Virus record (IMG/VR): IMGVR_UViG_3300042386_001233
Coordinates: 179,822 to 243,821 of that record
Strand: one strand, 5' to 3'
DNA: 64,000 nucleotides
Below, one piece after another: positions 36,790 to 62,973 of the stretch. How positions within the stretch are numbered: the first letter of the stretch is position 1; each line of letters starts with the position of its first letter. The notes beneath the pieces are model-generated. The model searched no databases and was not told where the DNA came from. It saw only the letters and a list, made by a program, of their open reading frames with translations. The position numbers were made by a program, and so were the translations under genes.

Positions 36790-38397
36790 TTATCTATTTA
36801 TGATTCTTTCCCAAGCTATTGAAACTTGTCTCGATATTGGATCGTAAATTACAATCTTCATATCATTAGTTCCTTTATGAAACCAGCTTCTATTCAAAGC
36901 TATATTAAATCCGTGTCTGGCGCTACCGACCACCGGAATTAACGCTGGTCTATACAAATTAGCCCACTGTCCAGTAACTATCCTTCCATTAATAATTACT
37001 CTAACAAGAACCGGAGATGCTCCGGACCTCTCACTAAAAGCCCACCCCGCCACTCTATCTAATCTTAAATATCCCACCCTAACAATCGGAGGAGGAATAG
37101 TAACTGTGGATGATGCTACAGAGGTCCAAGATCCTGTTTGAGAATCTCTGGCCTCAACACTTATAACATGCTCCCCTATTGTGAGACCGCCCAGATTAAA
37201 AACAAATGACCCACCAACCCCAGTCCATAGATACCCACTATCTGCACCATCTATTATTATTCTCACATAAATACTAGAGTTCGGAGAATTAAGATCTTTA
37301 GCCCATCCACTAATACTTCTTAAATTCTGACTGATTATGGCTCCTGTTGGTAATATGTTTCCATCATAAGGAACTCCCAACACATTAGATATAGCTGCCC
37401 CCACGTTCAATTTTCCTCCTGTTGCCACCTTTCCAAATAGTTCCGGAAGCTTATCTACTGATCCAAAAATAGCAGCCTTAACTTTTGAAATTGATAATCC
37501 AGGTTTAACAGAGTTCAACAAAGCTACAGCACCAGCCACTTGAGGAGCTGCCATACTAGTCCCCGCCATATATCCATAATTATTATATGGAATAGTAGAT
37601 AGTATCATGCTACCAGGAGCAGCAATATCTACATTAGTAGCTCCATAATTTGAAAAGCTAGCTAACTTTATTCCATCATATCCTAAAGCCCCTACACTAA
37701 TAATATTATCATTATCAAAACAACTAGGATATCTTAATGTAATATCATTATCGCTACCATTATTACCAGCCGCCACCGTCACCACCACCCCAGCATCATT
37801 TAATCTACCAATCGCCCCATACAACATATTACTAAAACCAGTCCCCCCACCCCAACTAGCATTAGCTACTACCACATTTACTCCATAAGTATTCTTCATC
37901 ATACTAATATAATCCATGGCTCGAATAGCCCCACCAGTATCGCCCACCCCCTTGTCGTTCATAAACTTTAAAGCCATTAAACTCACATTCCAATTAATCC
38001 CCGCCACCCCCAAACTATTGCTTCCTTCTGCGCCAATTATGCCTGCCACATGACTTCCGTGTCCGTATCGGTCCTGAATATCATTATTATTAGAATAAAA
38101 ATTCCAACCATTAATATCATCTATATATCCATTATTTTCATTATCTATCCCGTCCCCCGCTATCTCTCCAGGATTAGTCCATAGATTATTCTTCAAGTCC
38201 TGATTAGTTAAATCAATACCACTATCTATAATCGCAACAACAATGTCTTTTGAACCAGTTCCATACTGCCACGCTTGATATGCTGAAATACTTTGAAGAG
38301 CCCACTGATCATTAATTTTTGGATCATTAGGAACAACTGACAATAATTTTCTATTTTCTAGAGACTCTACAGTTAGACTAATAGCTTTTTTGCCCAT
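36790..38397 (-). CDS. subtilisin-like S8 serine protease with N-terminal LEPR-XLL-type motif
   Basis: IIDSG (Asp), HGSHVAG (His), GTSMAAP (Ser); ESLENRKLLS. Confidence 0.92.
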   Translation of the reverse strand: MGKKAISLTVESLENRKLLSVVPNDPKINDQWALQSISAYQAWQYGTGSKDIVVAIIDSGIDLTNQDLKNNLWTNPGEIAGDGIDNENNGYIDDINGWNFYSNNNDIQDRYGHGSHVAGIIGAEGSNSLGVAGINWNVSLMALKFMNDKGVGDTGGAIRAMDYISMMKNTYGVNVVVANASWGGGTGFSNMLYGAIGRLNDAGVVVTVAAGNNGSDNDITLRYPSCFDNDNIISVGALGYDGIKLASFSNYGATNVDIAAPGSMILSTIPYNNYGYMAGTSMAAPQVAGAVALLNSVKPGLSISKVKAAIFGSVDKLPELFGKVATGGKLNVGAAISNVLGVPYDGNILPTGAIISQNLRSISGWAKDLNSPNSSIYVRIIIDGADSGYLWTGVGGSFVFNLGGLTIGEHVISVEARDSQTGSWTSVASSTVTIPPPIVRVGYLRLDRVAGWAFSERSGASPVLVRVIINGRIVTGQWANLYRPALIPVVGSARHGFNIALNRSWFHKGTNDMKIVIYDPISRQVSIAWERIINR

Positions 38398-38468: not shown

Positions 38469-38795
38469 TCAATACCTAATTGGAACATAAACTGTTTGAG
38501 GAACACTAACTACCTCATATCTCTTTAAAAGAGTCCAGCATCGACGTTCTACCACAAAGTTTTGATAAGTTGTTACTGGAACGAGCTGAGGAGCTGCAGG
38601 AGCTATTATAATCGGATAGTATACTGGAACATACTGAATAGCTGGAGCTTGTTGAACAGCCATTGGTTGCTGAGGAACATAACTCATCCAATCACTACCA
38701 TATGATACTGAACATAGAGCAAATACAAACAATCCGCTTAATAGCTTTAGCATAAAATTATCCTCTGAGGTTAAAAGAAATTGACCAGTTTCCAC
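38469..38795 (-). CDS. small secreted protein
   Basis: signal peptide ..CSVSYG; V/P/Y/Q-rich; resembles 46376-46690. Confidence 0.6.
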   Translation of the reverse strand: METGQFLLTSEDNFMLKLLSGLFVFALCSVSYGSDWMSYVPQQPMAVQQAPAIQYVPVYYPIIIAPAAPQLVPVTTYQNFVVERRCWTLLKRYEVVSVPQTVYVPIRY

Positions 38796-38827: not shown

Positions 38828-39127
38828 TTAGTCCTTATAAGGAACCAAATGTTTGCGAACAAAGACCATATTAATAAAAAATCCACAAAAAGCACTCAGT
38901 ATGTTACTAACCATTGGAGCTGTAAAATCTTGCAAAGGATTTAAAAAGAACGATAGGCCAAGACTAATCCAAAAACTAACACACTCATGACACAACAATG
39001 GTTTACGAACGTATGGAACTCGCGCTACCAAATTTCTTAGTGGCCGAGTAACTTCAGTATCACTCCAAGCGTACGACAAAGCTAAAGAAATAAATAAATA
39101 AATTATGAACATGCTCTTATTCCCCAA
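38828..39127 (-). CDS. DUF1360-like membrane protein
   Basis: LLCHECVSFW motif, TM helices. Confidence 0.6.
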   Translation of the reverse strand: MGNKSMFIIYLFISLALSYAWSDTEVTRPLRNLVARVPYVRKPLLCHECVSFWISLGLSFFLNPLQDFTAPMVSNILSAFCGFFINMVFVRKHLVPYKD

Positions 39128-39474
39128 GTTCCTGGACCCTGAGCATTTACGTGCGTATTAAAAAAAGTTCCTCCGCAGTATAATGCCCCTTGTTGTCTGA
39201 AGTACGTGGCACTTAGTGTTGCATTGCCATAATACCATTGATTGTTTGCATAAGCATAAGTGGCAGTGTTATACGAGGAGTTTCCAGTACCACAGTAGTT
39301 ATTGCCAGAGTTACATGCTGCTATAAGGATAAGGCAACTACCTGTTCCACAATATGATGATGTCCCATCACTACAACAGTACTCTCCCGCTGAACAATTA
39401 CTGTTAGATGTACAAGGAGCTAGTTTGTTTACCACTTGGCTATAAACTGGTCCGTTACTATTATCATATGCCAT
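39103..39474 (-). CDS. Cys-rich protein with shared N-terminal leader (1 of 3)
   Basis: MAYDNSNGPVYS leader then Cys/Gly/Ser/Asn-rich body. Confidence 0.65.
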   Translation of the reverse strand: MAYDNSNGPVYSQVVNKLAPCTSNSNCSAGEYCCSDGTSSYCGTGSCLILIAACNSGNNYCGTGNSSYNTATYAYANNQWYYGNATLSATYFRQQGALYCGGTFFNTHVNAQGPGTWGIRACS

Positions 39475-39490
39475 AATATTGTACCCTTTT

Positions 39491-40003
39491 TTATAAAGAT
39501 TCCCACAACTCCACATCAGAAGAATATGCTTCACGAATAAGAATTTTCTGTTCTTCCGTCAAGACTGGCTTGTCTTCTTCTAACTCCTCATTTAATATTG
39601 GTACAGGAGTCTCCAACCCTAACCATTGTGCGCAATCATCTATTTGATCAGGGAATCGAAAGTAGGTTATTCCTTCAGCCAATAGTCCCATAGATTCTAG
39701 TGTCCAGAAATGAACATCAAAAGATATTGATTCAAGTCCTTCTTCTACGGTTTTTTGTTGTCTAGCACAAGATGAGCGAAATCTTTCAACAGGGTCTCTA
39801 ACTAAGCAACACAAATTAGGAATATCATTATCGTCTAATGGCGAACCTATAGTATGTGTGGTTGCGTTAATGGGATGCCATCTTTCTCCTTCTGGATTTC
39901 TTAGTGACGTTGGTAATGCTTGCCATATTACACTGTAGCTTCCGCTACGAGCCACAAGAGCAAACCTTTTTCCATTTGGTAGTGTGATTTTTGCGCCTTT
40001 CAT
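39491..40003 (-). CDS. sulfotransferase family 2-like protein
   Basis: ARSGSYS 5'-PSB-like loop, VRDPVERFRS 3'-PB motif. Confidence 0.7.
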   Translation of the reverse strand: MKGAKITLPNGKRFALVARSGSYSVIWQALPTSLRNPEGERWHPINATTHTIGSPLDDNDIPNLCCLVRDPVERFRSSCARQQKTVEEGLESISFDVHFWTLESMGLLAEGITYFRFPDQIDDCAQWLGLETPVPILNEELEEDKPVLTEEQKILIREAYSSDVELWESL

Positions 40004-40014
40004 AGTATTTCTCC

Positions 40015-40848
40015 TTATGTGATTGTGATTGTGCCGGTGTATCCGCCGCTGTACCGCGACCCGCGCAGGTCAACAATATAATCGCCGGGGTTCATCGTAA
40101 GCGTCTTAGTCAAGCCATACGGGTACGGGGCCGAATAAGTGCCATTCTTATCTAATGTCCAACCCGAATTATTGTAGTTGACAATAGAACGTAGTGCATT
40201 TACGCCGCCGGTTGTTAAATCCCACCCGGTGTTATTTCCGCGTCTGTTTATAAACGCAATCGTTACTGAACGCGCTGAACCCGCAGGTACGGTAAAGAAG
40301 ACCTTGCCAGCATGTGCATTGGCATAAACGGTAAAGCTGGTCACCAGACCGCTTACGCTAACATTCGCTGCCGGATCGAAATTTGCAAAGTCGGTGCCAT
40401 CAGGGAATGGCTTGGCACTGGCAAGCACAGAGTTGGCAAACGTATACGTCGCTGTGGACGAGCTAGGATAGTTGTTAAAGTTGCCGCCGGGAACACTCAC
40501 ATAGTAAGTGCCAGCGTTTAGAGAGGACGGGTTGTCGTAGTTGAAAAGGCCGTCTTTATCTAGCTGACCGCCGCCGTGGTTGGTCACAGAGCGGAAAAAC
40601 TTGGGGGTGCCAGTGATGGTGCCGGAGTTTCCACTGAGGGTGAAAACATGGGTCCAGAGGGTCGAAGGATAAGAAGGAGAATAACCTTGGAAGGTTGTGC
40701 GTGTGAAAGAGTTGCTTGTGTTGGACCAAGTGGCGGGCCACGGCTGGACCCCAACGCTGCCGCCATAGTTGTCGGTGGGGCGCGCGAAGCCGGTGAATAA
40801 AGCAGGCTTCCCAGTTAACACGCTATAAATTGGCCCATTATCATTCAT
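40015..40848 (-). CDS. beta-rich protein with shared N-terminal leader (2 of 3)
   Basis: MNDNGPIYSVLTGKP leader; GC-rich body. Confidence 0.7.
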   Translation of the reverse strand: MNDNGPIYSVLTGKPALFTGFARPTDNYGGSVGVQPWPATWSNTSNSFTRTTFQGYSPSYPSTLWTHVFTLSGNSGTITGTPKFFRSVTNHGGGQLDKDGLFNYDNPSSLNAGTYYVSVPGGNFNNYPSSSTATYTFANSVLASAKPFPDGTDFANFDPAANVSVSGLVTSFTVYANAHAGKVFFTVPAGSARSVTIAFINRRGNNTGWDLTTGGVNALRSIVNYNNSGWTLDKNGTYSAPYPYGLTKTLTMNPGDYIVDLRGSRYSGGYTGTITIT

Positions 40849-40885
40849 GGTGTTGTATCCTGTTGAGTAAGTTATTCAATAATCA

Positions 40886-41290
40886 CTACAAGAAATACAC
40901 CACTACTTTATCATCTCTTTCAGCCACGCTAAACATTCGGAACATCTTGCCGGGTAAAGTTCCCGCAAATGCCGCCCACGCTTCTTCTCCCTTATCAACA
41001 AGGAAGACCTTACCAGCATAATTATTAGCAGCTCGTTCATCACTTAAAGATTGTAGCTTAACAGTTATTTCACTAGCATCTTTAACATACTGATCTAAAA
41101 TATTTGGATTAGCTTCTAGATGTTCAGAGAAGAATTTAAAAACTCTTCCTCGACAAGAACAATTAGGATTATCCTTAAAAGTCACAAGATCCGCCAGAAT
41201 GGAAGGAAAATCGTTCTTAAGACGGTTAAAAGTTTCTTCGTCCTTAATCAGAATAGGAAGAATATCGGCCACATTGTTTTTATTGATCAT
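40886..41290 (-). CDS. hypothetical protein
   Basis: 134-aa ORF with RBS; NCSCRG. Confidence 0.7.
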   Translation of the reverse strand: MINKNNVADILPILIKDEETFNRLKNDFPSILADLVTFKDNPNCSCRGRVFKFFSEHLEANPNILDQYVKDASEITVKLQSLSDERAANNYAGKVFLVDKGEEAWAAFAGTLPGKMFRMFSVAERDDKVVVYFL

Positions 41291-41365
41291 ATTTAGTCTC
41301 CTTTAGTTTATAATAGAGACCATTGAGGTATTGGCAAGATTATATCGTGGATAGATTTTAATCTC

Positions 41366-41677
41366 TCAAGATGGTGCGTTACAAAGAATAGTATCGTTAC
41401 AGAATTGTCCAACTTTAGACGCATCGCAAGTTCCGCAATAAGAAGTAAATCCCTCTGGTGTGCCGGTGCCGTTAACGTAATAACCACCGGTGAATTGATT
41501 GCAAGGAGCTGCTGTACAACAACCAGAGCAACCCGCGTAATTATGAACGGCATTTCCGAAGTCCCATTCGTAACCGCCATATCCATCACTTATACACTGT
41601 ACAGAAAAAGTTCCGCACTGCCCAGGCTTCCCAGTCAAAACACTATAAACTGTCCCATCATTATTATCATATACCAT
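41366..41677 (-). CDS. Cys-rich protein with shared N-terminal leader (3 of 3)
   Basis: MVYDNNDGTVYSVLTGKP leader; 10 Cys. Confidence 0.65.
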   Translation of the reverse strand: MVYDNNDGTVYSVLTGKPGQCGTFSVQCISDGYGGYEWDFGNAVHNYAGCSGCCTAAPCNQFTGGYYVNGTGTPEGFTSYCGTCDASKVGQFCNDTILCNAPS

Positions 41678-41736
41678 ATAACAATTTCCCTTACAACTAG
41701 TAGTAATTATAGACTATACACCCCAAACGGGGGAGA

Positions 41737-42912
41737 CTAGCAAAAAGTTATTTGATATTCCTTCAATATCTTTTTAAGTTGTGTTTTTTCGTTCTTTTCC
41801 AACTCCCTATCACTAGAAATTCTTACATTCAAATTCTCAAACTGAACTTGAACCAAGTTATTCTTAAAATCTAATTTGTTAATTTCTTCTTTTATTTGCG
41901 TTAACTTGGTAGTTCCTTTAAGAGCAAAGGGCCGATTTTCCAGCATCTTGAATGGCCGATACAATCTTCCACATTGACATCGCAAGTATTGGTCTTGAAT
42001 CTCACAAACATCTCCGTTCCAATAATTTACAAAAGGCGCAGCTAGTGAAAAATAATCCGTAGTTACTAATTTAGAATCTATACTTTTATGAAGCGTAATA
42101 TTATCTAATAAATGATAAGTTCCAAACTTACAAGTAAAGAAACTGGCCCCACCATCCCAACATCTCATATGATCACAGTGATAATCTATAAGCTTGTTAA
42201 TTTTCAAAAATTCAAAATCTCTTTGTAATGGAAATTCATTACTATGACTCAATAAATAACATAATTTTTTAGAATACTTTCTTTTTCTGATCTCATTACA
42301 TAGCTGGTTAATTATAGGTCCCGTACTAATTATAATATCAATTTCAGTACCGCTTAAATAATCGAACAATTTTTCATACCAATCAGTACTACCAAAATTT
42401 TGAAAGTTAATATAATCTACCGAACAATCCTTACTACCATGATTATACTGAAACTGATTTGAAACAGAGTGGTCCGATCTGACAAATTCACTATCTGAGA
42501 AAACAGACAATGTGTCTTTAAAATAATACATTATTGCTATTTTAATATGATGTTGATATAATCCAAACTCCTTGAGTATCAAACTCCAATGTTGATCATC
42601 TATTAAAAATCTAGCATATCTATTATATATAGAGTATGAAAAAGGATCTCCTGTAGTACTTCCGCTAGTGCTACGTATCCCACTATTCTCTTTTAGCTGT
42701 GGAACATACCAGTTTTCTTTATTAAGTAGATCATCCTTGATAAATATTCTGTCTGGCCGATATAAAGTCTTATAAACATTACTATGTTCAAGTGCCCAAT
42801 TTACTATATTCTTTTCCAAAAGCTCTTGATAGTATCTTAAAGTAGCATCGTCTTGATATAACAAGGTGTCTGCCATCTCAACATAACTATCTAATAGTTT
42901 TTCAGAATTCAT
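41737..42912 (-). CDS. phenylacetate-CoA ligase/CapK-like adenylate-forming protein
   Basis: STSGSTTG P-loop, ..GDV.., RCQCGR. Confidence 0.75.
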   Translation of the reverse strand: MNSEKLLDSYVEMADTLLYQDDATLRYYQELLEKNIVNWALEHSNVYKTLYRPDRIFIKDDLLNKENWYVPQLKENSGIRSTSGSTTGDPFSYSIYNRYARFLIDDQHWSLILKEFGLYQHHIKIAIMYYFKDTLSVFSDSEFVRSDHSVSNQFQYNHGSKDCSVDYINFQNFGSTDWYEKLFDYLSGTEIDIIISTGPIINQLCNEIRKRKYSKKLCYLLSHSNEFPLQRDFEFLKINKLIDYHCDHMRCWDGGASFFTCKFGTYHLLDNITLHKSIDSKLVTTDYFSLAAPFVNYWNGDVCEIQDQYLRCQCGRLYRPFKMLENRPFALKGTTKLTQIKEEINKLDFKNNLVQVQFENLNVRISSDRELEKNEKTQLKKILKEYQITFC

Positions 42913-43609
42913 TAGTCTTCTCTACAGTATCCTTCAGATTATAGATAAAAGAACAAGGAGTAAAAATATTATTATTAGGATTTAACAGTTTTTTCTTTTC
43001 ATTATATTTCATAATAATTTCATTATATTTTACCATTGTTTCCCAATCCATACCCTCTCCAAAATCTTTAATAGTATCTTTTTTACTATTAGATACCGGA
43101 GGAGTAATACTAGGAATACTTTTAAATTTATAGTCTAGATAGTTTGCTCGTAAAATAATATCATTATCATGAACTCCGGCAGGAAAAAAGTTTTCATCAT
43201 ATCCTCCTATCTTAACAAAGATTTCTTTGCTCATTCCTATTCTTCCATGAGTTCCTTTAAGATATTCATGACAATGAACTCCTTGATCAGAAGATCTTAT
43301 TTCATCAACTATATTATCTAAATAATTATCACAATCTAAATTAAAAACATAATCTCCAGAGGAAAATCGCACAGCAAAATTTTTAGCTATTGGAATAGAA
43401 TACTTAAAATCAAGAGCTTGATAGTATTTAACAAAACTATATTTTTCCAAATATTCCGCGATATATTCAGATAAGTTATCTGTTGATCCACAGTCCACAA
43501 TTATCCATTCAATATCTTGGTATTGTCCAAGAGTCTCCATATTTTTTAAAAAAGTCTTACTAAACTGATACAGTCTATTTTTTATTTGAGAGCATATTGA
43601 TATTTTCAT
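42902..43609 (-). CDS. glycosyltransferase family 2 (GT7-like C-terminus)
   Basis: IIVDCGSTD, NLDCD, GGYDENF..G.HD.D. Confidence 0.85.
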   Translation of the reverse strand: MKISICSQIKNRLYQFSKTFLKNMETLGQYQDIEWIIVDCGSTDNLSEYIAEYLEKYSFVKYYQALDFKYSIPIAKNFAVRFSSGDYVFNLDCDNYLDNIVDEIRSSDQGVHCHEYLKGTHGRIGMSKEIFVKIGGYDENFFPAGVHDNDIILRANYLDYKFKSIPSITPPVSNSKKDTIKDFGEGMDWETMVKYNEIIMKYNEKKKLLNPNNNIFTPCSFIYNLKDTVEKTNEF

Positions 43610-45426
43610 TCTACAGTAACGCTTTTTGCTAAGTTTCTTGGTCTATCAATATTACAGCCCCTTAGCTTTGCGCTATAATAAGAAAACAACTGCAGAGGAA
43701 CTACGGAAACTAGTGGACACACATGATCAATACATGAAGGAACATAAATATTATGATCTCCAGCAATATCTTGTTGTTGATTGCTTATAGTAATTACTTG
43801 ACCATCTCTTGCTTTTATTTCTTGAATATTGTTTTGTAATTTTTGATACTGATCCATATTATTAGATATAACAATTGTTGGAGTGTCTCTATCAACCAAA
43901 GCTAAAGGACCATGTTTCATTTCAGCAGCAGCATATCCTTCAGCATGAATGTAACTAATCTCTTTAAGCTTCAAAGCACCCTCTAGTGCTATAGGGAAAT
44001 TGTATCCTCTTCCAAGAAATAAACAATTCTTAATATCACAGTACTCCTCAGCAATACTCCATATCTCTTCTGAAGAGTCTAGTGTTTGTTTAATTAAGTT
44101 TGGAAGATTTAGTATTTCATTAATTATATTTCTTCTAATCTCAATATTGTATTTTTCTTGATTTTGATTAATCCATAAAGATAATAATAGAAGCACCAAA
44201 ACTTGATTTAAAAAAGTCTTGGTACTAGCAACACCAATTTCTACTCCTGACCTTAAAAATATGCCACAGTTAGTCATTCTTGCCATGGTTGAATTAGGAA
44301 CATTGCATATTCCAATGACAGTTGCTCCTTGAGCTTTTGCTTTTTCTAAAGCAGCAATAGTATCTGCGGTTTCTCCGCTCTGACTAATTCCAATAACAAT
44401 ATCTCCAGGACTAATTGCTGTTAATCGATATCTAAATTCGCTAGCATATTCAACACTAACTTTAATATCGTTTAATTCTTCAATATAGTATTTGCCTAAT
44501 AATCCAGCATTCCAGCTTGATCCACAAGCAACAATAGTAATATGTTTTGCTGAAGACAATACTTTTTCATATCCTAATAATCCACCAAGTTTAATTTTAT
44601 CTTTAGAGATACGCCCAGTAATACATTGAGTTATTGTTTCTGACTGTTCATAAATCTCTTTGAGCATGTACGACTCATAATCCCCTTTATCAGAAGGCAT
44701 TCTATGATCTAGTACTTTTTCTATTTCACAGTCTACTTCGATTCCGCATGTCATATCATAGGTGACAATTTGATCATTAATTTTACAGACGCTATTGTCT
44801 TTAAGATATACTATATTAGTAATCTTCTGATCAATACCCATTTTATCAGAGGATACATAGTATTCGCCATCTCCTATTCCTACTATCAAAGAGCTTCCTT
44901 TCCTAGCACAAACCAGAGTATCTGTACTATACCTATCGATTACAACAATAGCATAAGCCCCCATAACTTGCTCTAAGGCTAGTTTAGTTGCTTCAAATAA
45001 CGACAGATTATTAGAGATCATAATATCATATATCAAATATAATAGAACTTCACTGTCAGTATCTGATGAGAAAGTATACTTCGGACTTAATTCAGCCTTG
45101 AGTTCTTTATAGTTTTCAATAATTCCGTTATGAACTAATACTAATCTCTGATCACTAGTAACATGAGGATGACAGTTGTTTAGTGATGGTTTTCCATGAG
45201 TTGCCCAGCGAGTATGAGCAACAGCACAGTACGATCTCAGTAAGGACGAACCAGCCTGTTTTTTTAAAGACTCTACCGGTCCCACAGACTTATAAACTTT
45301 AAATTCTGGGCCACATACATAACACACCCCAGCACTATCATATCCTCTATATTCTAGAGACGATAGTTTGTCTAATATATCATTTGAACAATTGTTCTTT
45401 CCGACGTATGCTACAATTCCGCACAT
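43606..45426 (-). CDS. glmS: glutamine-fructose-6-phosphate aminotransferase
   Basis: MCGIV N-terminus, EYRGYDSAG, HTRWATHG, VASTK, PRNLAKSVTVE. Confidence 0.97.
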   Translation of the reverse strand: MCGIVAYVGKNNCSNDILDKLSSLEYRGYDSAGVCYVCGPEFKVYKSVGPVESLKKQAGSSLLRSYCAVAHTRWATHGKPSLNNCHPHVTSDQRLVLVHNGIIENYKELKAELSPKYTFSSDTDSEVLLYLIYDIMISNNLSLFEATKLALEQVMGAYAIVVIDRYSTDTLVCARKGSSLIVGIGDGEYYVSSDKMGIDQKITNIVYLKDNSVCKINDQIVTYDMTCGIEVDCEIEKVLDHRMPSDKGDYESYMLKEIYEQSETITQCITGRISKDKIKLGGLLGYEKVLSSAKHITIVACGSSWNAGLLGKYYIEELNDIKVSVEYASEFRYRLTAISPGDIVIGISQSGETADTIAALEKAKAQGATVIGICNVPNSTMARMTNCGIFLRSGVEIGVASTKTFLNQVLVLLLLSLWINQNQEKYNIEIRRNIINEILNLPNLIKQTLDSSEEIWSIAEEYCDIKNCLFLGRGYNFPIALEGALKLKEISYIHAEGYAAAEMKHGPLALVDRDTPTIVISNNMDQYQKLQNNIQEIKARDGQVITISNQQQDIAGDHNIYVPSCIDHVCPLVSVVPLQLFSYYSAKLRGCNIDRPRNLAKSVTVE

Positions 45427-46349
45427 GATTTAGTTTTTAAGTACCATTCTATGGTTTTTTTTAATCCTGATATAAACTCTTGCTTTGGCTCCCAGTCTAA
45501 TAGCTGCTTAGCTTTGGCAATATTCAAAACTCGTCTAGGCTGTCCATTTGGTTTAGAGCTATCCCAAAGAATATCTCCGCTATAATTAACCAATTCTTTA
45601 ATTTTGTCAACTAATAATAGAATACTAATTTCTTTGCCAGATCCCACATTAATAGGACCGGGATCCTTAACCTTTTCCATTCCGTCAACAACTGCTCGTG
45701 CTGCATCTTCAACGTACAAGAACTCTCTAGTTGCTGATCCATCTCCCCAACAAGAAACATTTGGGAAATTACGCTTTTTAGCAATTATGAATTTTCTAAT
45801 TAATGCAGGAATAACATGAGAAGAAGCTGGATCAAAGTTATCAAAAGGTCCATAAAGATTAGTTGGTACTATTACGCAACTATTTAATCCATACTGTTTT
45901 TTATAAGCCTCCAACATCACAAATAAGGCCTTTTTAGCAATCCCATAAGGAGCATTAGTTTCTTCAGGATATCCATCCCAAATATCCTCTTCCATAAAAG
46001 GAGCATCACAAAACTTTGGATAAGAACATACTGTACCAATTTGAACAAACTGGCTAACCCCGTACAGCCTGCTCATCTCAATAAGATTAGATCCCATAAC
46101 CATATTACTATAAAAGAATCTTCCAGGATTAGCCATATTCGCCCCGATACCTCCAACCTCTGCTGCCATATGAATCACAGTATCGGGCTTATGCTCTTCA
46201 AATAGTTTTTTAACAGTGCTATAATCAGTTAGATCATAGTCTTTCTTTCGTGGTATAAATATATCGGTTTGGCCGTAATTCCTATTCAGTAGTTCCTGAT
46301 AAACAAATCGGCCTAAAAATCCACCACCACCAGTTAATAATATCTTCAT
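45411..46349 (-). CDS. fcl: GDP-L-fucose synthase
   Basis: GGGGFLG, AAEVGGIGAN, YGIAK, SHVIPALIRK, WGDGSATREFL. Confidence 0.92.
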   Translation of the reverse strand: MKILLTGGGGFLGRFVYQELLNRNYGQTDIFIPRKKDYDLTDYSTVKKLFEEHKPDTVIHMAAEVGGIGANMANPGRFFYSNMVMGSNLIEMSRLYGVSQFVQIGTVCSYPKFCDAPFMEEDIWDGYPEETNAPYGIAKKALFVMLEAYKKQYGLNSCVIVPTNLYGPFDNFDPASSHVIPALIRKFIIAKKRNFPNVSCWGDGSATREFLYVEDAARAVVDGMEKVKDPGPINVGSGKEISILLLVDKIKELVNYSGDILWDSSKPNGQPRRVLNIAKAKQLLDWEPKQEFISGLKKTIEWYLKTKSCAEL

Positions 46350-46375: not shown

Positions 46376-46690
46376 TTAATACCTATAAGGACTTACAACT
46401 GGACTAGTAATATAATATGGTCCGCTATTACGAAACCAACAAGGTCTATGATAATATACAGGAGCAATATGCTGGTATTGATAAATCGTAAAATTAGGTA
46501 TGACTATTGGCCGAAATTCCCAAGTATTGACCAACACCTCTTTCTGCACCAATACTGGAACAAAAGAAACATTTGGAGCTTGATAGTATACGGTGGATTG
46601 AACGGGAACAGTTTGATATATTACATCTTGACCATAAGAAACTGAACAGAACACTAGAGCCAAAAGAACCAGGGCGCTTTTAATCATCAT
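46376..46690 (-). CDS. small secreted protein
   Basis: signal peptide ..CSVSYG. Confidence 0.6.
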   Translation of the reverse strand: MMIKSALVLLALVFCSVSYGQDVIYQTVPVQSTVYYQAPNVSFVPVLVQKEVLVNTWEFRPIVIPNFTIYQYQHIAPVYYHRPCWFRNSGPYYITSPVVSPYRY

Positions 46691-47952: not shown

Positions 47953-48734
47953 GCCTCGACGAAGAAAAATATATCAGAGAGAACTACAAAACATTAAGCT
48001 TACAGCAGATAGCTGATAACCTCAATCGTACTGTCTCTCCCGTACAAAGATATGTTTCTGAGAATCAACTATCTATTGTTGAGTCAGATAATGATGCAGA
48101 AATATTAAAACACAAGCTTCACACGAAAACTTTTTGGAGAGAAATACAGAGACAGTTTGATGTTGACACTGGAGAGCTTGAATACTTTGAAGATACGTGG
48201 GTAGGTTTAATAAAACAGTTTAGAGAAGACGTTTTACCAGCAGAAGAACTACAAATTAAACAATTCATCACCATAGATATTCTGATTAACAGAAGCATGA
48301 AGGAGCGTAAGAGACACATCGCTGAAACAGAAAAACTTCAGAAACAAGTAGACAAAGAATATGAAAAGACAGAAACAGAAAGAGACATTCCGAAACTTGC
48401 AAATCTGGAAACCCAACTGAGCTTTGCTCGCAATAGCATTGCCAATTATACCAATGAGTATACAAAGCTATTAAATGAACAACAGAAAATTAGTAAAGAT
48501 CTAAAGGCGACCCGAGAGCAGAGAATTAAAAGAATTGAAGACGGGAAAAGTAGCTGGGTCGGTTTAATTAGAATGTTAGAAGATGAAGAAGTGAGAGAAC
48601 GAGAAGGTAAGGAAATGGAAATTCTGAGCATGGCTACAGAAAAAGTTAAGTATAAGCTACAAGGATATCATAACTATCAAGACGGAGTTGTCGATAAACC
48701 CCTACTAACCCCAGAAAGTGTGGACAATGAATAA
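47913..48734 (+). CDS. putative terminase small subunit (HTH + coiled coil)
   Basis: N-terminal HTH, long coiled coil, position upstream of TerL. Confidence 0.4.
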   Translation: MEANNIPRKRGQLSLDEEKYIRENYKTLSLQQIADNLNRTVSPVQRYVSENQLSIVESDNDAEILKHKLHTKTFWREIQRQFDVDTGELEYFEDTWVGLIKQFREDVLPAEELQIKQFITIDILINRSMKERKRHIAETEKLQKQVDKEYEKTETERDIPKLANLETQLSFARNSIANYTNEYTKLLNEQQKISKDLKATREQRIKRIEDGKSSWVGLIRMLEDEEVREREGKEMEILSMATEKVKYKLQGYHNYQDGVVDKPLLTPESVDNE

Positions 48735-49731
48735 AACAGCACTGATAAGCGGAATAACAGGACAAGACGGTTCATATCTTGCAGAACTATTATTAGATTT
48801 AGACTATGCTGTTATAGGACTATATCGACGATCTAGTTCTTCTAATCTTGAAAGAATATCACACATTTCTAATCCAAATCTGCACCTAGAAGAATTTGAT
48901 CTAACCGATCCCAGCTCATGTATTTCAGTTATCAATAAGTATAAGCCAGATGAATTTTACAATTTAGCTGCACAAAGCCATGTTGGGACAAGTTTTAATC
49001 AGCCCACCACAACATTTGAAATTGACACTATAGGAGTTATTAATTTATTAGAGAGCATCAGGAAGTTTTCTAATAGTACAAAATTTTATCAGGCTAGCAC
49101 AAGTGAAATGTTTGGATCTAATTATTCTGTAGGAGTGGGTAATAATAAATATCAGAATGAAGATACTAAGTTTTTACCACAAAGCCCCTACGCTGTTGCC
49201 AAGATGGCAAGTCATAGAATGATACAAATATACAGAGAGGCTTATGGTCTATATACTTGTTCTGGAATTTTATTTAATCACGAAAGTCCACGACGAGGTG
49301 TAAATTTTGTTACTCGTAAGATAACTAATTTTATCGGTCAACTTGTTTCCGGATCAATATCACCTGCATCAAAACTTGGGTTGGGCAACTTAGAGGCTAG
49401 TAGAGATTGGGGACATGCTAGAGACTATGTCAAGGGCATGTTTTTAATGCTACAACAAGATGAAGCAGACGATTTTGTATTAAGTACTGGAGATACATAT
49501 ACTGTGAGAGAATTTTGTGAAAAAGCATTTTCTTATGTTAATTTAAATTGGTCCGATTACATATTTATTGATCCAGAGTTCTATAGACCCTGTGAGGTTA
49601 ATTATCTTAAAGGTGATAGTACTAAGGCAAGAAATAAGCTTGGGTGGTCTCCTAATGTGTCGTTTGATGATCTGGTCAAAGATATGGTAGATAGTGATAT
49701 TTCTAAATATAGAACCAACTCATATGTTTAA
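48727..49731 (+). CDS. gmd: GDP-mannose 4,6-dehydratase
   Basis: GITGQDGSYLAE, AAQSHV, YQASTSEMFG, SPYAVAK, NHESPRRG. Confidence 0.96.
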   Translation: MNKTALISGITGQDGSYLAELLLDLDYAVIGLYRRSSSSNLERISHISNPNLHLEEFDLTDPSSCISVINKYKPDEFYNLAAQSHVGTSFNQPTTTFEIDTIGVINLLESIRKFSNSTKFYQASTSEMFGSNYSVGVGNNKYQNEDTKFLPQSPYAVAKMASHRMIQIYREAYGLYTCSGILFNHESPRRGVNFVTRKITNFIGQLVSGSISPASKLGLGNLEASRDWGHARDYVKGMFLMLQQDEADDFVLSTGDTYTVREFCEKAFSYVNLNWSDYIFIDPEFYRPCEVNYLKGDSTKARNKLGWSPNVSFDDLVKDMVDSDISKYRTNSYV

Positions 49732-52539: not shown

Positions 52540-53121
52540 ATGAAAATAGTAAAAGACAAAAATTATTGTAGATTATGTCGTCAATTTAATATTAACGCAA
52601 GTAATAATCGCACAAATTATTGTCAAAAATGTAAAAATAATATCGCTGTAAAAAATGATATTTTTGATAGATGGTCCTCTTCTAATGTTTTTATTAGTAC
52701 CTCATTTATTGATTGCGTTGATAAAAAAGAATGGTTAGGTTTTACAGACGTAAAATTTAATAATATGCTGATTGATCAAATATCTAATAAATTTTCTGAT
52801 TTATCCTATTGTATTTCTACTCCTGAAAGACAAAAACTTAAAAACTATATTGGTGGAAATTATTTATACTTACTTTCTGACGAAAAATGTAATTTATTAA
52901 AAATTGGTCAAACACAAAATCTGATTAATAGATTTAATAGATACTATAATGCGTCTGAGAGCAAACCAATTTATTATCATGTGTTTTCTGTTGACAGTTA
53001 TGAAAAACAAGACCTATACGAAGATAAAATTAGAAATTACTTAGAATTTTTGGGCTATGTTCTCCCACTCGATAACACTGGATCAAGACTCAAGTACATA
53101 CTACAAACCACAACAATATAA
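52540..53121 (+). CDS. GIY-YIG/T5orf172-like endonuclease
   Basis: YLYLL...LKIGQTQNL..R. Confidence 0.6.
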   Translation: MKIVKDKNYCRLCRQFNINASNNRTNYCQKCKNNIAVKNDIFDRWSSSNVFISTSFIDCVDKKEWLGFTDVKFNNMLIDQISNKFSDLSYCISTPERQKLKNYIGGNYLYLLSDEKCNLLKIGQTQNLINRFNRYYNASESKPIYYHVFSVDSYEKQDLYEDKIRNYLEFLGYVLPLDNTGSRLKYILQTTTI

Positions 53122-59225: not shown

Positions 59226-60917
59226 ATGTCTGTTCAAACATTAATTCAAGTTCGTAGAGGCACAGCAAGCGAATGGAGAGTTGCCAATTCAACTCTTAGT
59301 GCTGGTGAATGGGGTTTTGAAACAGACACAAAAAGATACAAGATAGGTGATGGTCTAACCTCATGGAATAGTTTAGCATATTCCTCAATATTACCATCGT
59401 CTAATGATCTGACTGGAGTTAGTGGTATTGGGGTTAGTTTCACATCAAACTCCGGTATCCCTGTAAGAATAGCTGTTACGGGTATTGGCTCTTCTCAGGT
59501 GACAGATTTTAATAGTAGTGTGAGTGGACTATTACCAGTTAAAAGTCTAGTTGCTGGAACCAATATATCTGTTACTCCAACCGGAGACAAAGGATTTGTA
59601 ATATCCTCAGAGGGCCTAGACACCAATGCTGTAAAAGATGTTGTTGGATCTACTATTAGTGGTGTTAGTGGAGTAGCAGTTAGTTATAATAATACATCTA
59701 AAGTTGTTACAGTTAGTTTAAGTGATCCTTCTATCCAGTCTACCGATGTTACAGACTTTAATAGTGCTGTTAGTGGTTTAGTAAATGGTATTTACGCTCC
59801 TCTCAGCAGTCCGACATTCACCGGTTCTATAACAATTCCTAATGGTACTGGTAATTTTAGCTCTTTACAGGTTGGTAATGTCCCTGTTAGTGTTAGCGGA
59901 CATACTCATCTAGCAGCTAATATCACAAACTTTAATAGTGTAGTAAGTGGACTTATAGGAGTAAAGAGTTTAACTGGTACTAGTGGTATTGGAGTAGTAA
60001 ATAACGCTGGCAGCCATACCATTGCGATTACCGGGATTCCTAGCTCTCTAATTACGGACCTGGGTAATATCGCCACAACAGAGGTTGTTGGTAGAACGGG
60101 CATACTTCTTACTTATGATAGTGTTTATGATAAGATGTATATCGACACAACTGGTGTGTCTTTGGTAGGACATACTCATAGTTGGAGTAATATTTCAGAC
60201 GCTTCAGCTATTGTATCTCTTAATGAGTTAGCATATTTATCTGGAGTATCTGCCGGAACTGCTAGTGCAGGAAGGGCTTTGGTGCTTGATTCTAACAAGA
60301 ATATTACTTCTATTAATTCTATTACTACTACTGGAAACATTACTGTTGGTGGAAATTTAGTAGTACAAGGTACTACTACAACAGTTAACAGTACTACTGT
60401 AGAAATTGGTGATAATATTATTAGAGTCAATGCTAGTGGTCTTAATACCGGAGGTATGGAAGTTTATACTGGTAGTGATACAAAATCTTTTGTATGGAAT
60501 ACATCATCAAATAGATGGGAATTCACTGGTGGTAATATTTATACTAGTGGTAATTTTATTGGATCATTAAGCGGCAATGCTAGTACTGTTACTAACGGAG
60601 TATATACAACAGATACTGGTACAGTAACAAGTACAATGATTGCAAATGATACTATCGTTGATGCTGATATCAATAGTGCTGCCGCCATCTCTTATAGCAA
60701 ATTGAATCTTTCAGCAAGTATTACAAACTCTGATATTGCTAGTAATGCAGCTATCGCAGTTTCCAAACTAGCTAGTAGCGGAGTAACTATTGGTAGTACA
60801 GTTGTGAATCTTGGGTCATCAACTAATAGTATCGCTGGGCTAAGTAGTATTAGTGGCACCAGTGCCGGTAGCCCAACAACCCTCTACTACTGTGTCATCG
60901 ATGGCGGAACACCATAA
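59226..60917 (+). CDS. tail fibre-like protein with Mtd N-terminal domain
   Basis: IQVRRGTASEW..N..L.AGE.GFETDT...KIGDG..W.SL; TDFNSxVSGL repeats. Confidence 0.75.
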   Translation: MSVQTLIQVRRGTASEWRVANSTLSAGEWGFETDTKRYKIGDGLTSWNSLAYSSILPSSNDLTGVSGIGVSFTSNSGIPVRIAVTGIGSSQVTDFNSSVSGLLPVKSLVAGTNISVTPTGDKGFVISSEGLDTNAVKDVVGSTISGVSGVAVSYNNTSKVVTVSLSDPSIQSTDVTDFNSAVSGLVNGIYAPLSSPTFTGSITIPNGTGNFSSLQVGNVPVSVSGHTHLAANITNFNSVVSGLIGVKSLTGTSGIGVVNNAGSHTIAITGIPSSLITDLGNIATTEVVGRTGILLTYDSVYDKMYIDTTGVSLVGHTHSWSNISDASAIVSLNELAYLSGVSAGTASAGRALVLDSNKNITSINSITTTGNITVGGNLVVQGTTTTVNSTTVEIGDNIIRVNASGLNTGGMEVYTGSDTKSFVWNTSSNRWEFTGGNIYTSGNFIGSLSGNASTVTNGVYTTDTGTVTSTMIANDTIVDADINSAAAISYSKLNLSASITNSDIASNAAIAVSKLASSGVTIGSTVVNLGSSTNSIAGLSSISGTSAGSPTTLYYCVIDGGTP

Positions 60918-60948: not shown

Positions 60949-62973
60949 ATGGCCTCATTATATACTTTTGGAAATAAATTTTCTTTCAAAAATAATAAAC
61001 TTACTATTAGAAATAGTTTGTTACCAGATTTTAATGGCGCAAATACTGGATTTGCTATTTGGAATGGTATTACTCGTCATTTAACAACTGTTGGAACAAA
61101 TGGTAGACCAAGCTATTATGGCTGTTTTGATATGACCGGTAATGCATATACTTGGAATGATTTAAATGGAACGGCTAGTGCGCAAAGAGGTTTAAGAGGC
61201 GGAGACTGGGACGATTACTATACTAATGATGAATCTTCAAAATTTCGTTTTTCTTATACAATAACTTCAACATGGTCAACTGTTGGTTTCCGTGTAGCCA
61301 GTTTATCTAATGAATACTCCTTAAATAATTTTGTTTTAGTTGGAGATATCAATAATTCTGCTGATACTACTGGATATGGAGCAGTTAGCTATTCTTATTA
61401 TATGAATAAATACCATGTAACTAATAATGAATATGTAGAATTTTTAAATGCTATTGCTAAGACTGATACATATAGCGTATATACAACTTCGATGAATAGT
61501 GACGCTAGAGCAGGAATTATCCGTAGTGGCTCTAGTGGTAATTACGTCTATAGCGTAAAAACGAATTACGGCAATAAACCAGCGGTATTGTTGAATTGGC
61601 TACACTCAGCAAGATACTGCAACTGGCTTCATAATAATAAACCGACAGGCGCACAAAATAGTGGAACTACAGAAGGAGGAGCATACACTCTAAATGGAAG
61701 AACTAGTGGTAATGCTGTAGTTAAAAACAGTGGAGCAAAATATCATATCCCAACAGAAAATGAATGGTACAAAGCGGGCTATTATAAAGGAGGAGGAACA
61801 AATAAAGGCTATTGGCTTTATGGTACACAAAGTAATACTCGCCCAGCTCCTGTTTATGCTGATGAGAATGGTAATGGTACTATAAGGCCAGTTAGTTTGA
61901 AGCCAACGACTGTTGTCGGATCCAATGTCTCAACAACTCCAGTTAGTGACAGAATTTATAATACTAATATCGTTGTGAATTATAGTAATGTGTCATCAGC
62001 TGGAATAACCGCAATTACTCCGATTACACAAAAAGACCCGAAACTTCCTGCTAATTTTAGCTTAAGTAATAATTTAGGCAAATATAATATTAGTACTAAT
62101 TCTTCTATATCTGGTAGTATAGACACCTGCTTCACACTACCGGCCTCTGTTACACAATCAGTTTTTGATAAAACAAGAATTTTTCATACCAATTCTTCCG
62201 GAGTTACTTCTGATGTAACAGTACTAACCGGCCCCAATGCTCCAAACTATTCTTTAAGAAAAATTTGTTGTAGAACTACTTCTTTTAGTGATTTTCATAT
62301 GGTGCCAGAAATAGACTTCGTTGATCAACCCATACCCAATTCTATTAGTGGAATTCCTGCTAATGGTACTATTGATTTAAGTTGGTCTATAAGTGATACT
62401 ACAGATATAGAAAACTATATCATAAAATATAGTACTGACACAGGATCTTCATGGACAGAATTTAACCATAATGCTTCTACAGGATTAGCTATTACTGTTG
62501 ATGGATTAACAAATAATACCAGCTATATCTTCACAATATCTTCGGTATCATCTTCTGGTATGAGCAACTTCTCCAATCCTAGTTCTTCTTTTACTCCAAT
62601 TCCTAGTATCCCTGATAGTCCAACCAATGTTGTTGGAATTCCCGGTATTGAGTCTGTTGACTTAAGATGGGACGTTCCTAACGACGGAGGCTCATCCATT
62701 ACTGATTATATTGTACAATATAGCTCTGATAGTGGGGCGACATGGACCACAACCAGCGAATCTATTATTTTATTTGCTGATGATATATCTACTACTAGAA
62801 ATTTTACAGTTTATAATTTAGGAATTATACCATATATCTTTAAAGTTTGTGCTGTCACTGAAGCTGGGAATAGTGATTTCTCCACCCCCTCGGACCCTGT
62901 AACACCATATTCTGATTCTTATGATATTTACATAGCAACCTATTCTACTATTGATCCTAATTTAATACCCTAG
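60949..62973 (+). CDS. FGE/SUMF1 (C-type lectin fold) + fibronectin III protein, permuted lectin domain
   Basis: DMTGN..W, RGGDW, GFRVAS precede VTNNEY..PTENEWYKA; two FN3 repeats. Confidence 0.75.
   Translation: MASLYTFGNKFSFKNNKLTIRNSLLPDFNGANTGFAIWNGITRHLTTVGTNGRPSYYGCFDMTGNAYTWNDLNGTASAQRGLRGGDWDDYYTNDESSKFRFSYTITSTWSTVGFRVASLSNEYSLNNFVLVGDINNSADTTGYGAVSYSYYMNKYHVTNNEYVEFLNAIAKTDTYSVYTTSMNSDARAGIIRSGSSGNYVYSVKTNYGNKPAVLLNWLHSARYCNWLHNNKPTGAQNSGTTEGGAYTLNGRTSGNAVVKNSGAKYHIPTENEWYKAGYYKGGGTNKGYWLYGTQSNTRPAPVYADENGNGTIRPVSLKPTTVVGSNVSTTPVSDRIYNTNIVVNYSNVSSAGITAITPITQKDPKLPANFSLSNNLGKYNISTNSSISGSIDTCFTLPASVTQSVFDKTRIFHTNSSGVTSDVTVLTGPNAPNYSLRKICCRTTSFSDFHMVPEIDFVDQPIPNSISGIPANGTIDLSWSISDTTDIENYIIKYSTDTGSSWTEFNHNASTGLAITVDGLTNNTSYIFTISSVSSSGMSNFSNPSSSFTPIPSIPDSPTNVVGIPGIESVDLRWDVPNDGGSSITDYIVQYSSDSGATWTTTSESIILFADDISTTRNFTVYNLGIIPYIFKVCAVTEAGNSDFSTPSDPVTPYSDSYDIYIATYSTIDPNLIP

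Follow-up and report, generated by a model that had tools for sequence, protein, structure and literature searches.

The joining of a constant N-terminal part to an exchangeable remainder is a known principle in phages, where it takes the form of a conserved N-terminal address or of a constant anchor carrying a variable tip. Thus, tail fibers with T7 gp17-type anchors and the S-protein of Mu and P1 combine a constant N-terminal part with an exchangeable C-terminal part, and the internal proteins of T4, which are basic and DNA-associated, are another case. Outside phages, animal conotoxin-type superfamilies place a conserved Sec signal and a pro-region before hypervariable disulfide-rich mature regions. 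In the class I lanthipeptides, a group of ribosomally synthesized and post-translationally modified peptides (RiPPs), S8 proteases are used as leader peptidases. Of the documented cases, the T4-type internal proteins come closest to the locus considered here: a short conserved N-terminal peptide is the sole common feature of these unrelated, small, clustered and fast-evolving phage proteins (PMC3012670). A comparable arrangement is described below for a stretch of 64,000 nucleotides (hereafter, the window) representing positions 179,822 to 243,821, i.e., the final 64 kb, of the IMG/VR virus record IMGVR_UViG_3300042386_001233. Three of its genes, termed A, B and C, encode otherwise unrelated proteins headed by one conserved leader peptide, which may be kept on the proteins as a handle that anchors interchangeable surface modules to the virion (a reading with an estimated probability of roughly 0.4). 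The record is a single contig of 243,821 bp with direct terminal repeats and 35.6% GC, assigned to a jumbo phage from lake water.

As in the T4 system, a conserved N-terminal peptide precedes unrelated bodies (a body being the part of the protein past the leader). With the constant-anchor tail fibers, the locus shares a constant N-terminus, a variable distal part, and recombination together with a compositional jump at the junction. The constant part, however, comprises only 16–19 residues here, the variable parts are often disulfide mini-domains of 25–110 residues, and the leader cassettes are separate genes organized in arrays which, in the window, lie outside the tail module; an invertase was not identified. 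The likeness to conotoxins consists in a multigene family with a highly conserved N-terminus ahead of hypervariable disulfide-rich regions, but the conserved part is in this case a non-hydrophobic phage peptide. Overall, the principle is known, unlike the leader itself, the repertoire of disulfide mini-proteins and the array organization.

One Leader on Unrelated Proteins

The three leader genes of the window are all encoded by the minus strand. Gene A (39103–39474) codes for 123 amino acids, with the leader in residues 1–19 (39418–39474) and ten cysteines in the body; gene C (41366–41677) codes for 103 amino acids, with the leader likewise in residues 1–19 (41621–41677) and ten body cysteines. 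Gene B (40015–40848) codes for 277 amino acids, devoid of cysteine, the leader occupying residues 1–16 (40801–40848). The leaders follow the pattern M-x-YDN-x-x-GP[IV]YS-x-[LV]-x-x-K-P; the three proteins can be aligned over ~18 N-terminal residues, and no alignment is found past the leader. The first-pass annotation of this DNA, made from the letters alone, had proposed one leader on three proteins with unrelated cores, two of them short and Cys-rich. This proposal is borne out, including the N-termini and the start positions that it quoted.

The similarity of the leaders is significant: when all 4,533 segments from the six-frame translation of the genome (243,821 bp) were searched with a leader profile, four matches were obtained, with E-values from 9e-15 to 2e-9 (1e-13 for gene A), the next one having E = 1. 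The fourth match, gene D (L001:9283–9453, located at ~117.28 kb of the genome, outside the window), encodes 56 amino acids including eight cysteines; a glycosyltransferase cluster flanks it on one side, and small membrane or structural-like genes flank it on the other. No Pfam family (E ≤ 0.1) and no PHROG family was found for proteins A, B and C. In Atlas, protein A retrieved only generic look-alikes of disulfide mini-proteins and knotted toxins, with the best score of 0.72, i.e., at the noise level.

Orthologues of the window genes differ in their N-termini and surroundings. The gene A orthologue in L004 possesses a longer and altered N-terminus in which the GPIYSQVVNK core is kept, and the gene C orthologues P0002 and P0003 reside in other phage contigs within other neighborhoods. 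The gene C orthologue at L003:1100–1405 (plus strand) has no ATG, GTG or TTG ahead of its leader. An ATT codon located 7 nucleotides past an AGGGG ribosome-binding site is probably its start; the gene callers placed the start 14 codons downstream, thereby dropping the leader.

A Phage-Restricted Family with Numerous Bodies

The family was searched for with a profile of eleven leaders in 1.84 billion representative proteins. This search returned 85 matches at E ≤ 1e-3, of which ~45 were short proteins (42–300 amino acids) matching from residue 1, the remainder being long proteins with 4–17 matches each (see below). The family consensus reads M-x-Y-D-N-N-D-G-P-I-Y-S-x-L-x-G-K-P, with the Ser and Lys invariant and the Pro nearly so. 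As to variants, the leader is duplicated in tandem over its full length in P0086 and in part in P0094, and it is reduced to the minimal form M-E-T-I-Y-S-N-L-G-G-K at L055:10082–10324. No family in Pfam, PHROG, NCBIfam or PADLOC covers any member, and no literature on the repeat motif discussed below or on such a leader family was found.

When the database matches and the loci were pooled and clustered at BLASTP E < 1e-3, the 70 distinct bodies formed 49 clusters, and no similarity was detected from one cluster to another. The search for diverse C-termini proposed in the first-pass annotation has been made, and its notion of a payload swapped behind a constant leader is correct and extends to the whole phage-restricted family. 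The bodies are 25–335 amino acids in size, mostly rich in Gly, Ser, Thr, Asn and Tyr, and net acidic in 58 of 70 cases. Their cysteines are even in number and non-zero in 56 bodies, odd in six and lacking in eight. Lysine amounts to only 1.3% of the body residues, so that the leader Lys is often the sole lysine of the protein. Such a make-up (acidic, lysine-poor, with an even number of cysteines) would be that of disulfide-bonded, surface-exposed binding domains.

The conserved leader residues are encoded by diverse synonymous codons (GGG, GGA and GGT for Gly, four codons for Pro, five for Leu, AAA and AAG for Lys), which shows that selection acts on the peptide. A degenerate DNA pattern designed for the leader recovered 13 viral loci, each of which is a true leader gene; the same pattern, run over bacterial genomes totaling 596 Gb, yielded 11 chance sites only and no family member. 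So far, the family is confined to viral contigs, representing a lineage of uncultured freshwater jumbo phages.

Arrays and the Turnover of Cassettes

Tandem arrays of 3–8 leader genes were encountered in the genomes G001–G004: six to eight genes in G001 (381 kb), four in the complete genome G002 (238 kb) and several in each of G003 and G004. The array of G002 is syntenic with the window, where the order comprises a PaaK-like gene, cassettes, a 134-residue protein gene, a gene for a 99-residue CxxC membrane protein, cassettes again and a small exported protein. Despite occupying the same slots, the G002 cassettes (351, 120, 138 and 67 amino acids) carry bodies unrelated to those of A, B and C.

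Leader-only stubs were found as well, one of 17 amino acids after a sulfotransferase gene in L009 and those of 19 and 35 amino acids in G001; the stub positions are L009:11410–11463, L010:8943–9235 and around L010:5426. One stub precedes a fragment that resembles, by homology, the C-terminal part of the sulfotransferase-like protein described below. These stubs of 17–35 codons are taken as relics of deleted cassettes.

In some of the relatives, copies of a head of ~110 nucleotides (~45 upstream nucleotides plus the leader) recur at the DNA level, both within a genome and between genomes, and the DNA identity of the repeated heads stops at the last leader codons. The 22-nucleotide motif CATATATAAGTCAAAAGAGGTA occurs exactly three times in G001 (262200, 265711 and 266736), each time directly upstream of a leader gene or a stub, and also upstream of a leader in another, unrelated phage contig (L003, ~165–186); neither the window's genome nor G002 contains it. 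This upstream motif is cassette-specific. Each gene represents a cassette in which a short head (the leader, joined in some relatives by the conserved upstream segment) is fused to one unrelated body; according to the proposed mechanism, recombination between conserved heads would allow bodies to be gained, lost and exchanged.

In two more distant phages, genes for a MoxR-type AAA ATPase and a DUF2201/VWA protein are located a few kb from the arrays (L003:5159–7627; L055:3216–5695), a proximity which may be a matter of synteny only.

The Body of Protein B, Its Carriers and Its Constant Partner

The body of protein B is the only part of the locus whose relatives are informative. The homologues of B (50–74% identity) occur with or without the leader, and the B body starts at the same residue (FTGFAR) behind three different N-terminal parts: the leader; an N-terminal region with an fn3 domain (P0009); and, in L012, a ~180-residue domain with a long (SETPTPTPT)n linker. 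The latter fusion sits within a block of Laminin_G/fn3 proteins of 1,000–2,000 amino acids, of the fiber or adhesin type. Since fn3 domains and PT linkers carry exposed modules, these fusions provide the main evidence that the B body, at least, may be a virion-surface module, with the leader as an alternative minimal carrier of it.

The first-pass annotation had remarked that the DNA of this body is GC-richer than its surroundings, as is the case: GC is 0.525 and GC3 (GC at third codon positions) is 0.588, versus a GC3 of 0.17–0.32 in the neighboring genes. The jump is located at the leader/body junction, with the leader of the same gene showing a GC3 of 0.375. In three other phages, the bodies of B homologues have a GC3 of 0.48–0.52 against 0.17–0.32 in other genes, the high-GC3 bodies being located at 40015–40800 (minus strand) of the window, L009:10001–10888, L010:10001–10939 and L012:9860–10675. 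No donor of the GC-rich body was found.

AlphaFold2 (AF2) modeled B with a pLDDT of 33 from the single sequence and of 53, as an all-beta protein, from an 11-row alignment; neither Foldseek against PDB nor the Atlas shape search matched the model above TM 0.35.

The constant partner of the B body is a sulfotransferase-like protein of 170 amino acids (39491–40003, minus strand), whose gene comes right after that of the B homologue in each of four independent contexts (71–86% identity), even where the leader is lacking (L012). These two make up the sole constant gene pair near the leader genes. The sulfotransferase announced in the first-pass annotation is a putative one by resemblance, with viral Sulfotransfer_2 clusters as language-model look-alikes (Atlas score 0.96, 184 shared features) and an RDPxERFxS motif, and with no match by sequence in Pfam, NCBIfam or PDB. 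Sulfation of the leader tyrosines was considered and rejected, since both are dispensable (Phe variants and leaders lacking YDN are known in the family) and since the enzyme tracks the B body, not the leader.

A Proposed Role of the Leader as a Retained Handle

The only matches of the leader profile outside the family are long phage tail-fiber proteins comprising 4–17 tandem 14-residue units such as SGSYSDLTNKPALF; their E-values of 3e-40 to 1e-8 are summed over these 4–17 units. Examples are P0016, with a collagen-like N-terminus, and P0022, with a Pfam PTR match at 4.5e-21. The segment GPIYSVLTGKPALFTG of B may be compared with the fiber unit GVYSDLTGKPTLFTG, and the leader core G-P-I-Y-S-x-L-x-G-K-P looks like one fiber-repeat unit, a resemblance to be treated as a lead, not as proof. 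In the terms of the described shaft repeats (PTR, PF12789, and the 14-residue ‘SYSDLTNKPxLF’ units), the core x-Y-S-x-L-x-[GN]-K-P matches one unit; the leader differs in being a single unit at the extreme N-terminus (two in P0086). Conversely, when the 4,533 genome segments were searched with a profile built from 83 units, B came first (E 0.029). The sole trace of PTR in the genome is a sub-cut-off score of 14.6 bits in its Mtd_N fiber, and no solved structure containing the 14-residue repeat was found.

The reading favored here, with the probability given above, is that the leader is a virion-anchoring handle. It would be kept on the protein, unlike the cleaved leader of a RiPP, and would be equivalent to one 14-residue unit of a tail-fiber shaft. 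By means of this handle, variable bodies would be docked onto a common virion site, most likely a fiber or another surface structure, so the phage would display several interchangeable binding modules at once. That the proteins are located on the virion, that they keep their leader and dock through it, and that the bodies bind a target are all presumed here.

Several observations make this reading attractive. The leader proteins possess no Sec signal, and two small exported proteins flanking the island have classical signal peptides. As the phage uses Sec elsewhere, the leader proteins would, like virion parts, remain cytoplasmic up to the lysis of the cell. The retained handle would explain this absence of a Sec signal along with the exposed type of the bodies, the likeness to fiber repeats and the alternative carriers of the B body; it would also explain the conservation of a very short peptide at the protein level and the presence of several cassettes per genome. 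A virion-docking peptide had been offered in the first-pass annotation as the alternative to a RiPP system, and it appears to fit better, as judged from the carriers of the B body and the fiber-repeat likeness.

Other observations weigh against it. In the window, the leader genes sit among genes of sugar metabolism, outside the tail module. The likeness to fiber repeats is short and is strongest in B, where the LFTG part of the match lies in the body; in the reciprocal search, C comes no higher than 17th; Pfam PTR is not detected on proteins A, B and C at E ≤ 0.1; and no protein with tandem fiber repeats of this type was found in the phage lineage. For the bodies of A and C, IMG/VR contained no leaderless fusions, identical copies of the same phage being the only matches. 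Finally, the AF2 monomer models of B, of low confidence, leave the leader unstructured.

Alternative Explanations

Among the rivals of the retained handle, an effector role survives best, though it is judged unlikely. In this case, the proteins would be soluble disulfide-rich lectins, toxins or host-surface modifiers released or exported to act outside the virion, with the leader as a pro-peptide or a tag for sorting, export or modification, recognized once and perhaps then removed. The body composition and the cysteine parity would suit secreted mini-proteins, the look-alikes in Atlas are generic toxin- or inhibitor-like knots (at noise-level scores), and the leader Lys, often unique in the protein, would be in line with such a tag. 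Besides small Sec-exported proteins and glycan enzymes, the island encodes a CxxC membrane protein and a subtilase whose motif is of an extracellular type. Still, neither a hydrophobic signal nor a transporter or conserved peptidase adjoins the arrays, ordinary Sec signals serve the phage for the export of other proteins, the subtilase is unlinked to the arrays in the relatives, and the B body recurs as the C-terminal domain of fiber-module proteins.

A capsid-targeting sequence (CTS) of the T4 type appears rather improbable. Here, the leader would send cargo into the prohead and be cut by the head maturation protease, and the cargo would be ejected with the DNA. This system provides the precedent of one conserved N-terminal peptide on unrelated phage proteins (PMC3012670); the phage does encode a head maturation protease (phrog_94, 2.5e-21; L001:15896–16567), 6.5 kb from gene D; and the leader genes are small, clustered and hypervariable. 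However, the sequence of the leader does not resemble the CTS, and the leader/body junction lacks a conserved cleavage motif of the Glu type. The bodies, acidic, lysine-poor and of the disulfide type, differ from the basic DNA-associated cargo of T4, and one of them (that of B) also forms the terminal module of proteins with fn3 domains or PT linkers within a fiber/adhesin block.

A bolder version of docking, decidedly improbable as it stands, would make the leader a portable tag for covalent attachment or strand insertion: a single fiber-repeat unit that would dock as a beta-strand and then be locked by its invariant Lys and Ser onto a fiber or capsid protein in the manner of an isopeptide tag. 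If this were true, the particle of one phage could bear dozens of unrelated disulfide mini-binders, drawn from a repertoire open to change, which would represent a protein-level, cassette-based alternative to diversity-generating retroelements for altering the binding of the virion.

That the head is mainly a device of DNA and expression (a portable promoter, ribosome-binding site, start region and recombination substrate, with a peptide of little function) seems very improbable. The repetition of the ~110-nucleotide head within and between phages, its sharp end at the leader/body junction and the frequent recombination indicated by the stubs would all suit such a device. Against it stands the variety of synonymous codons at the invariant residues, which shows selection on the peptide. 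The peptide is also kept where the upstream DNA is not conserved (genes B and C of the window) and where the start codon is apparently ATT.

Neighboring Genes and the Question of Enzyme Linkage

The framework of the island is formed by three genes on the minus strand. The 134-residue protein (40886–41290), with a C-S-C motif, has homologues of 59–78% identity in G001 and G002 and no family or PDB match; its gene is located within the array in G002 and far from it in G001. The 99-residue membrane protein (38828–39127) bears a C-H-E-C motif, in line with the CxxC membrane protein of the first-pass annotation. Its homologues (62–81% identity) are encoded directly after the 134-residue protein in both G001 and G002, and neither Pfam nor NCBIfam holds a matching family. 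The third gene (41737–42912) encodes a 391-residue adenylate-forming protein of the PaaK/CapK-like type, with homologues of 45–54% identity in G001 (four paralogues) and G002; the acyl-CoA ligase-like neighbor that had been named thus finds a counterpart in PDB, the phenylacetate-CoA ligase 9s3l, though at a weak E-value of 4.9e-4.

Two neighbors were identified by Pfam, just as the first-pass annotation had listed them: a family-2 glycosyltransferase (GT2; 42902–43609, minus strand; Pfam Glyco_tranf_2_2 5e-11, Glycos_transf_2 7e-10) and an S8 subtilase (36790–38397, minus strand; Pfam Peptidase_S8 2.8e-48). In G001 and G002, the relatives of the subtilase show only 35–37% identity and lie at distant positions. 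It was the sole match to defense-system models. Residues 8–22 of the subtilase contain a motif of the ‘Planctomycete extracellular’ type (ESLENRKLLS; Planc_extracel E 0.038), a possible hint at a planctomycete host.

The downstream edge of the island is marked by a small Y/P/V-rich protein with a Sec signal (38469–38795, minus strand), which has a paralogue at 46376–46690 on the same strand (BLASTP E 2e-7 between the two). Both of these flanking proteins, ~100 amino acids each, end in RY, and a homologue is found in G002 at the same position (L054:12337–12633).

Interleaving of the leader genes with tailoring enzymes, as had been claimed, is seen in the window and in G002, and it is not kept across the relatives. 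In G001, the PaaK-like, 134-residue and 99-residue genes follow one another without an intervening cassette, and the array is located 145 kb away; no such enzymes were found near the arrays of L003, L004 and G004. It follows that the enzyme linkage is particular to the window's genome. The check for a co-occurrence of enzymes with leader homologues, likewise proposed in the first-pass annotation, had a negative outcome. Scans of the neighbors with Pfam and NCBIfam recognized only the GT2 and Peptidase_S8, plus GlmS and Fcl further out, and no RiPP maturase, leader-recognition domain or export peptidase.

The RiPP-like pathway which the first-pass annotation had preferred, with the leader recruiting the sulfotransferase, the ligase-like enzyme and the glycosyltransferase, the S8 protease cutting the leader off and the cores ending as modified peptides, is scarcely credible and largely refuted by this missing co-occurrence: its leader/core architecture is real, with a variable Cys-rich core, a protease of the kind used as leader peptidase in class I lanthipeptides and tailoring-type enzymes nearby in this one genome, a sulfotransferase-like gene always following B, and cassettes interleaved with the PaaK-like, 134-residue and CxxC membrane genes in the window and G002, but no RiPP enzyme family adjoins the leader genes, the family matches of the neighbors being limited to GT2, S8 and sugar-nucleotide enzymes, the framework genes of G001 stand together without cassettes, 145 kb from the array, the arrays of L003, L004 and G004 have no such enzymes nearby, the S8 gene is unlinked in relatives, the sulfotransferase follows the B body even in the leaderless L012, and the bodies, folding as domains of up to 335 amino acids and in several cases Cys-free, far exceed RiPP cores.

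Genome Setting

The GT2 gene belongs to a sugar-nucleotide module together with GlmS (E 1e-217), GDP-L-fucose synthase (Fcl) and GDP-mannose 4,6-dehydratase (Gmd), encoded at 42902–46349 on the minus strand and 48718–49731 on the plus strand. Further glycosyltransferases are located at ~112–116 kb of the genome. A glycan is probably made or modified by the phage.

The structural module of a tailed phage spans 50–63 kb of the window on the plus strand, including the large terminase, the portal, the major head protein (distantly like its counterpart in Bacillus phage G), an Mtd_N-type fiber (59226–60917) and, after it, a protein with an FGE-sulfatase domain (C-type-lectin fold) and an fn3 domain (60949–62973). 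The two latter proteins have the usual look of targets of diversity-generating retroelements. Such an element was rejected because reverse transcriptase is absent from the genome (RVT_1 search negative). Between the terminase and portal genes, an open reading frame of 193 codons (52540–53121, plus strand) shows weak T5orf172 or endonuclease-like matches (E 0.004), and it may encode a homing endonuclease. No motif is shared upstream of the structural genes and the leader genes in the window, which speaks against a general late promoter common to them. A search of G000–G002 for the disulfide machinery yielded no Erv1/ALR oxidase, and thioredoxins turned up in the relatives only.

At least 24 metagenome runs of lake water, dating from 2018–2024, contain the phage with essentially full identity, and several IMG/VR contigs also carry it; RNA runs were looked for and none was listed, and no cultured relatives were found.

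Significance

The tempting annotation of this locus as a RiPP system had to be corrected, since the adjacency of enzymes in a single genome failed to hold across the relatives. Whatever the function of the leader, the family clearly exemplifies how cassettes in phage genomes turn over at a defined junction. At the same time, new binding scaffolds may be drawn from it, since it comprises at least 49 unrelated compact, probably disulfide-bonded folds without known relatives. Should the leader prove to be a docking handle, its 16–19 residues would constitute a minimal address by which any small domain could be placed on a phage particle, and a widespread lineage of lake jumbo phages would be able to vary its surface while the fiber genes remain unchanged.

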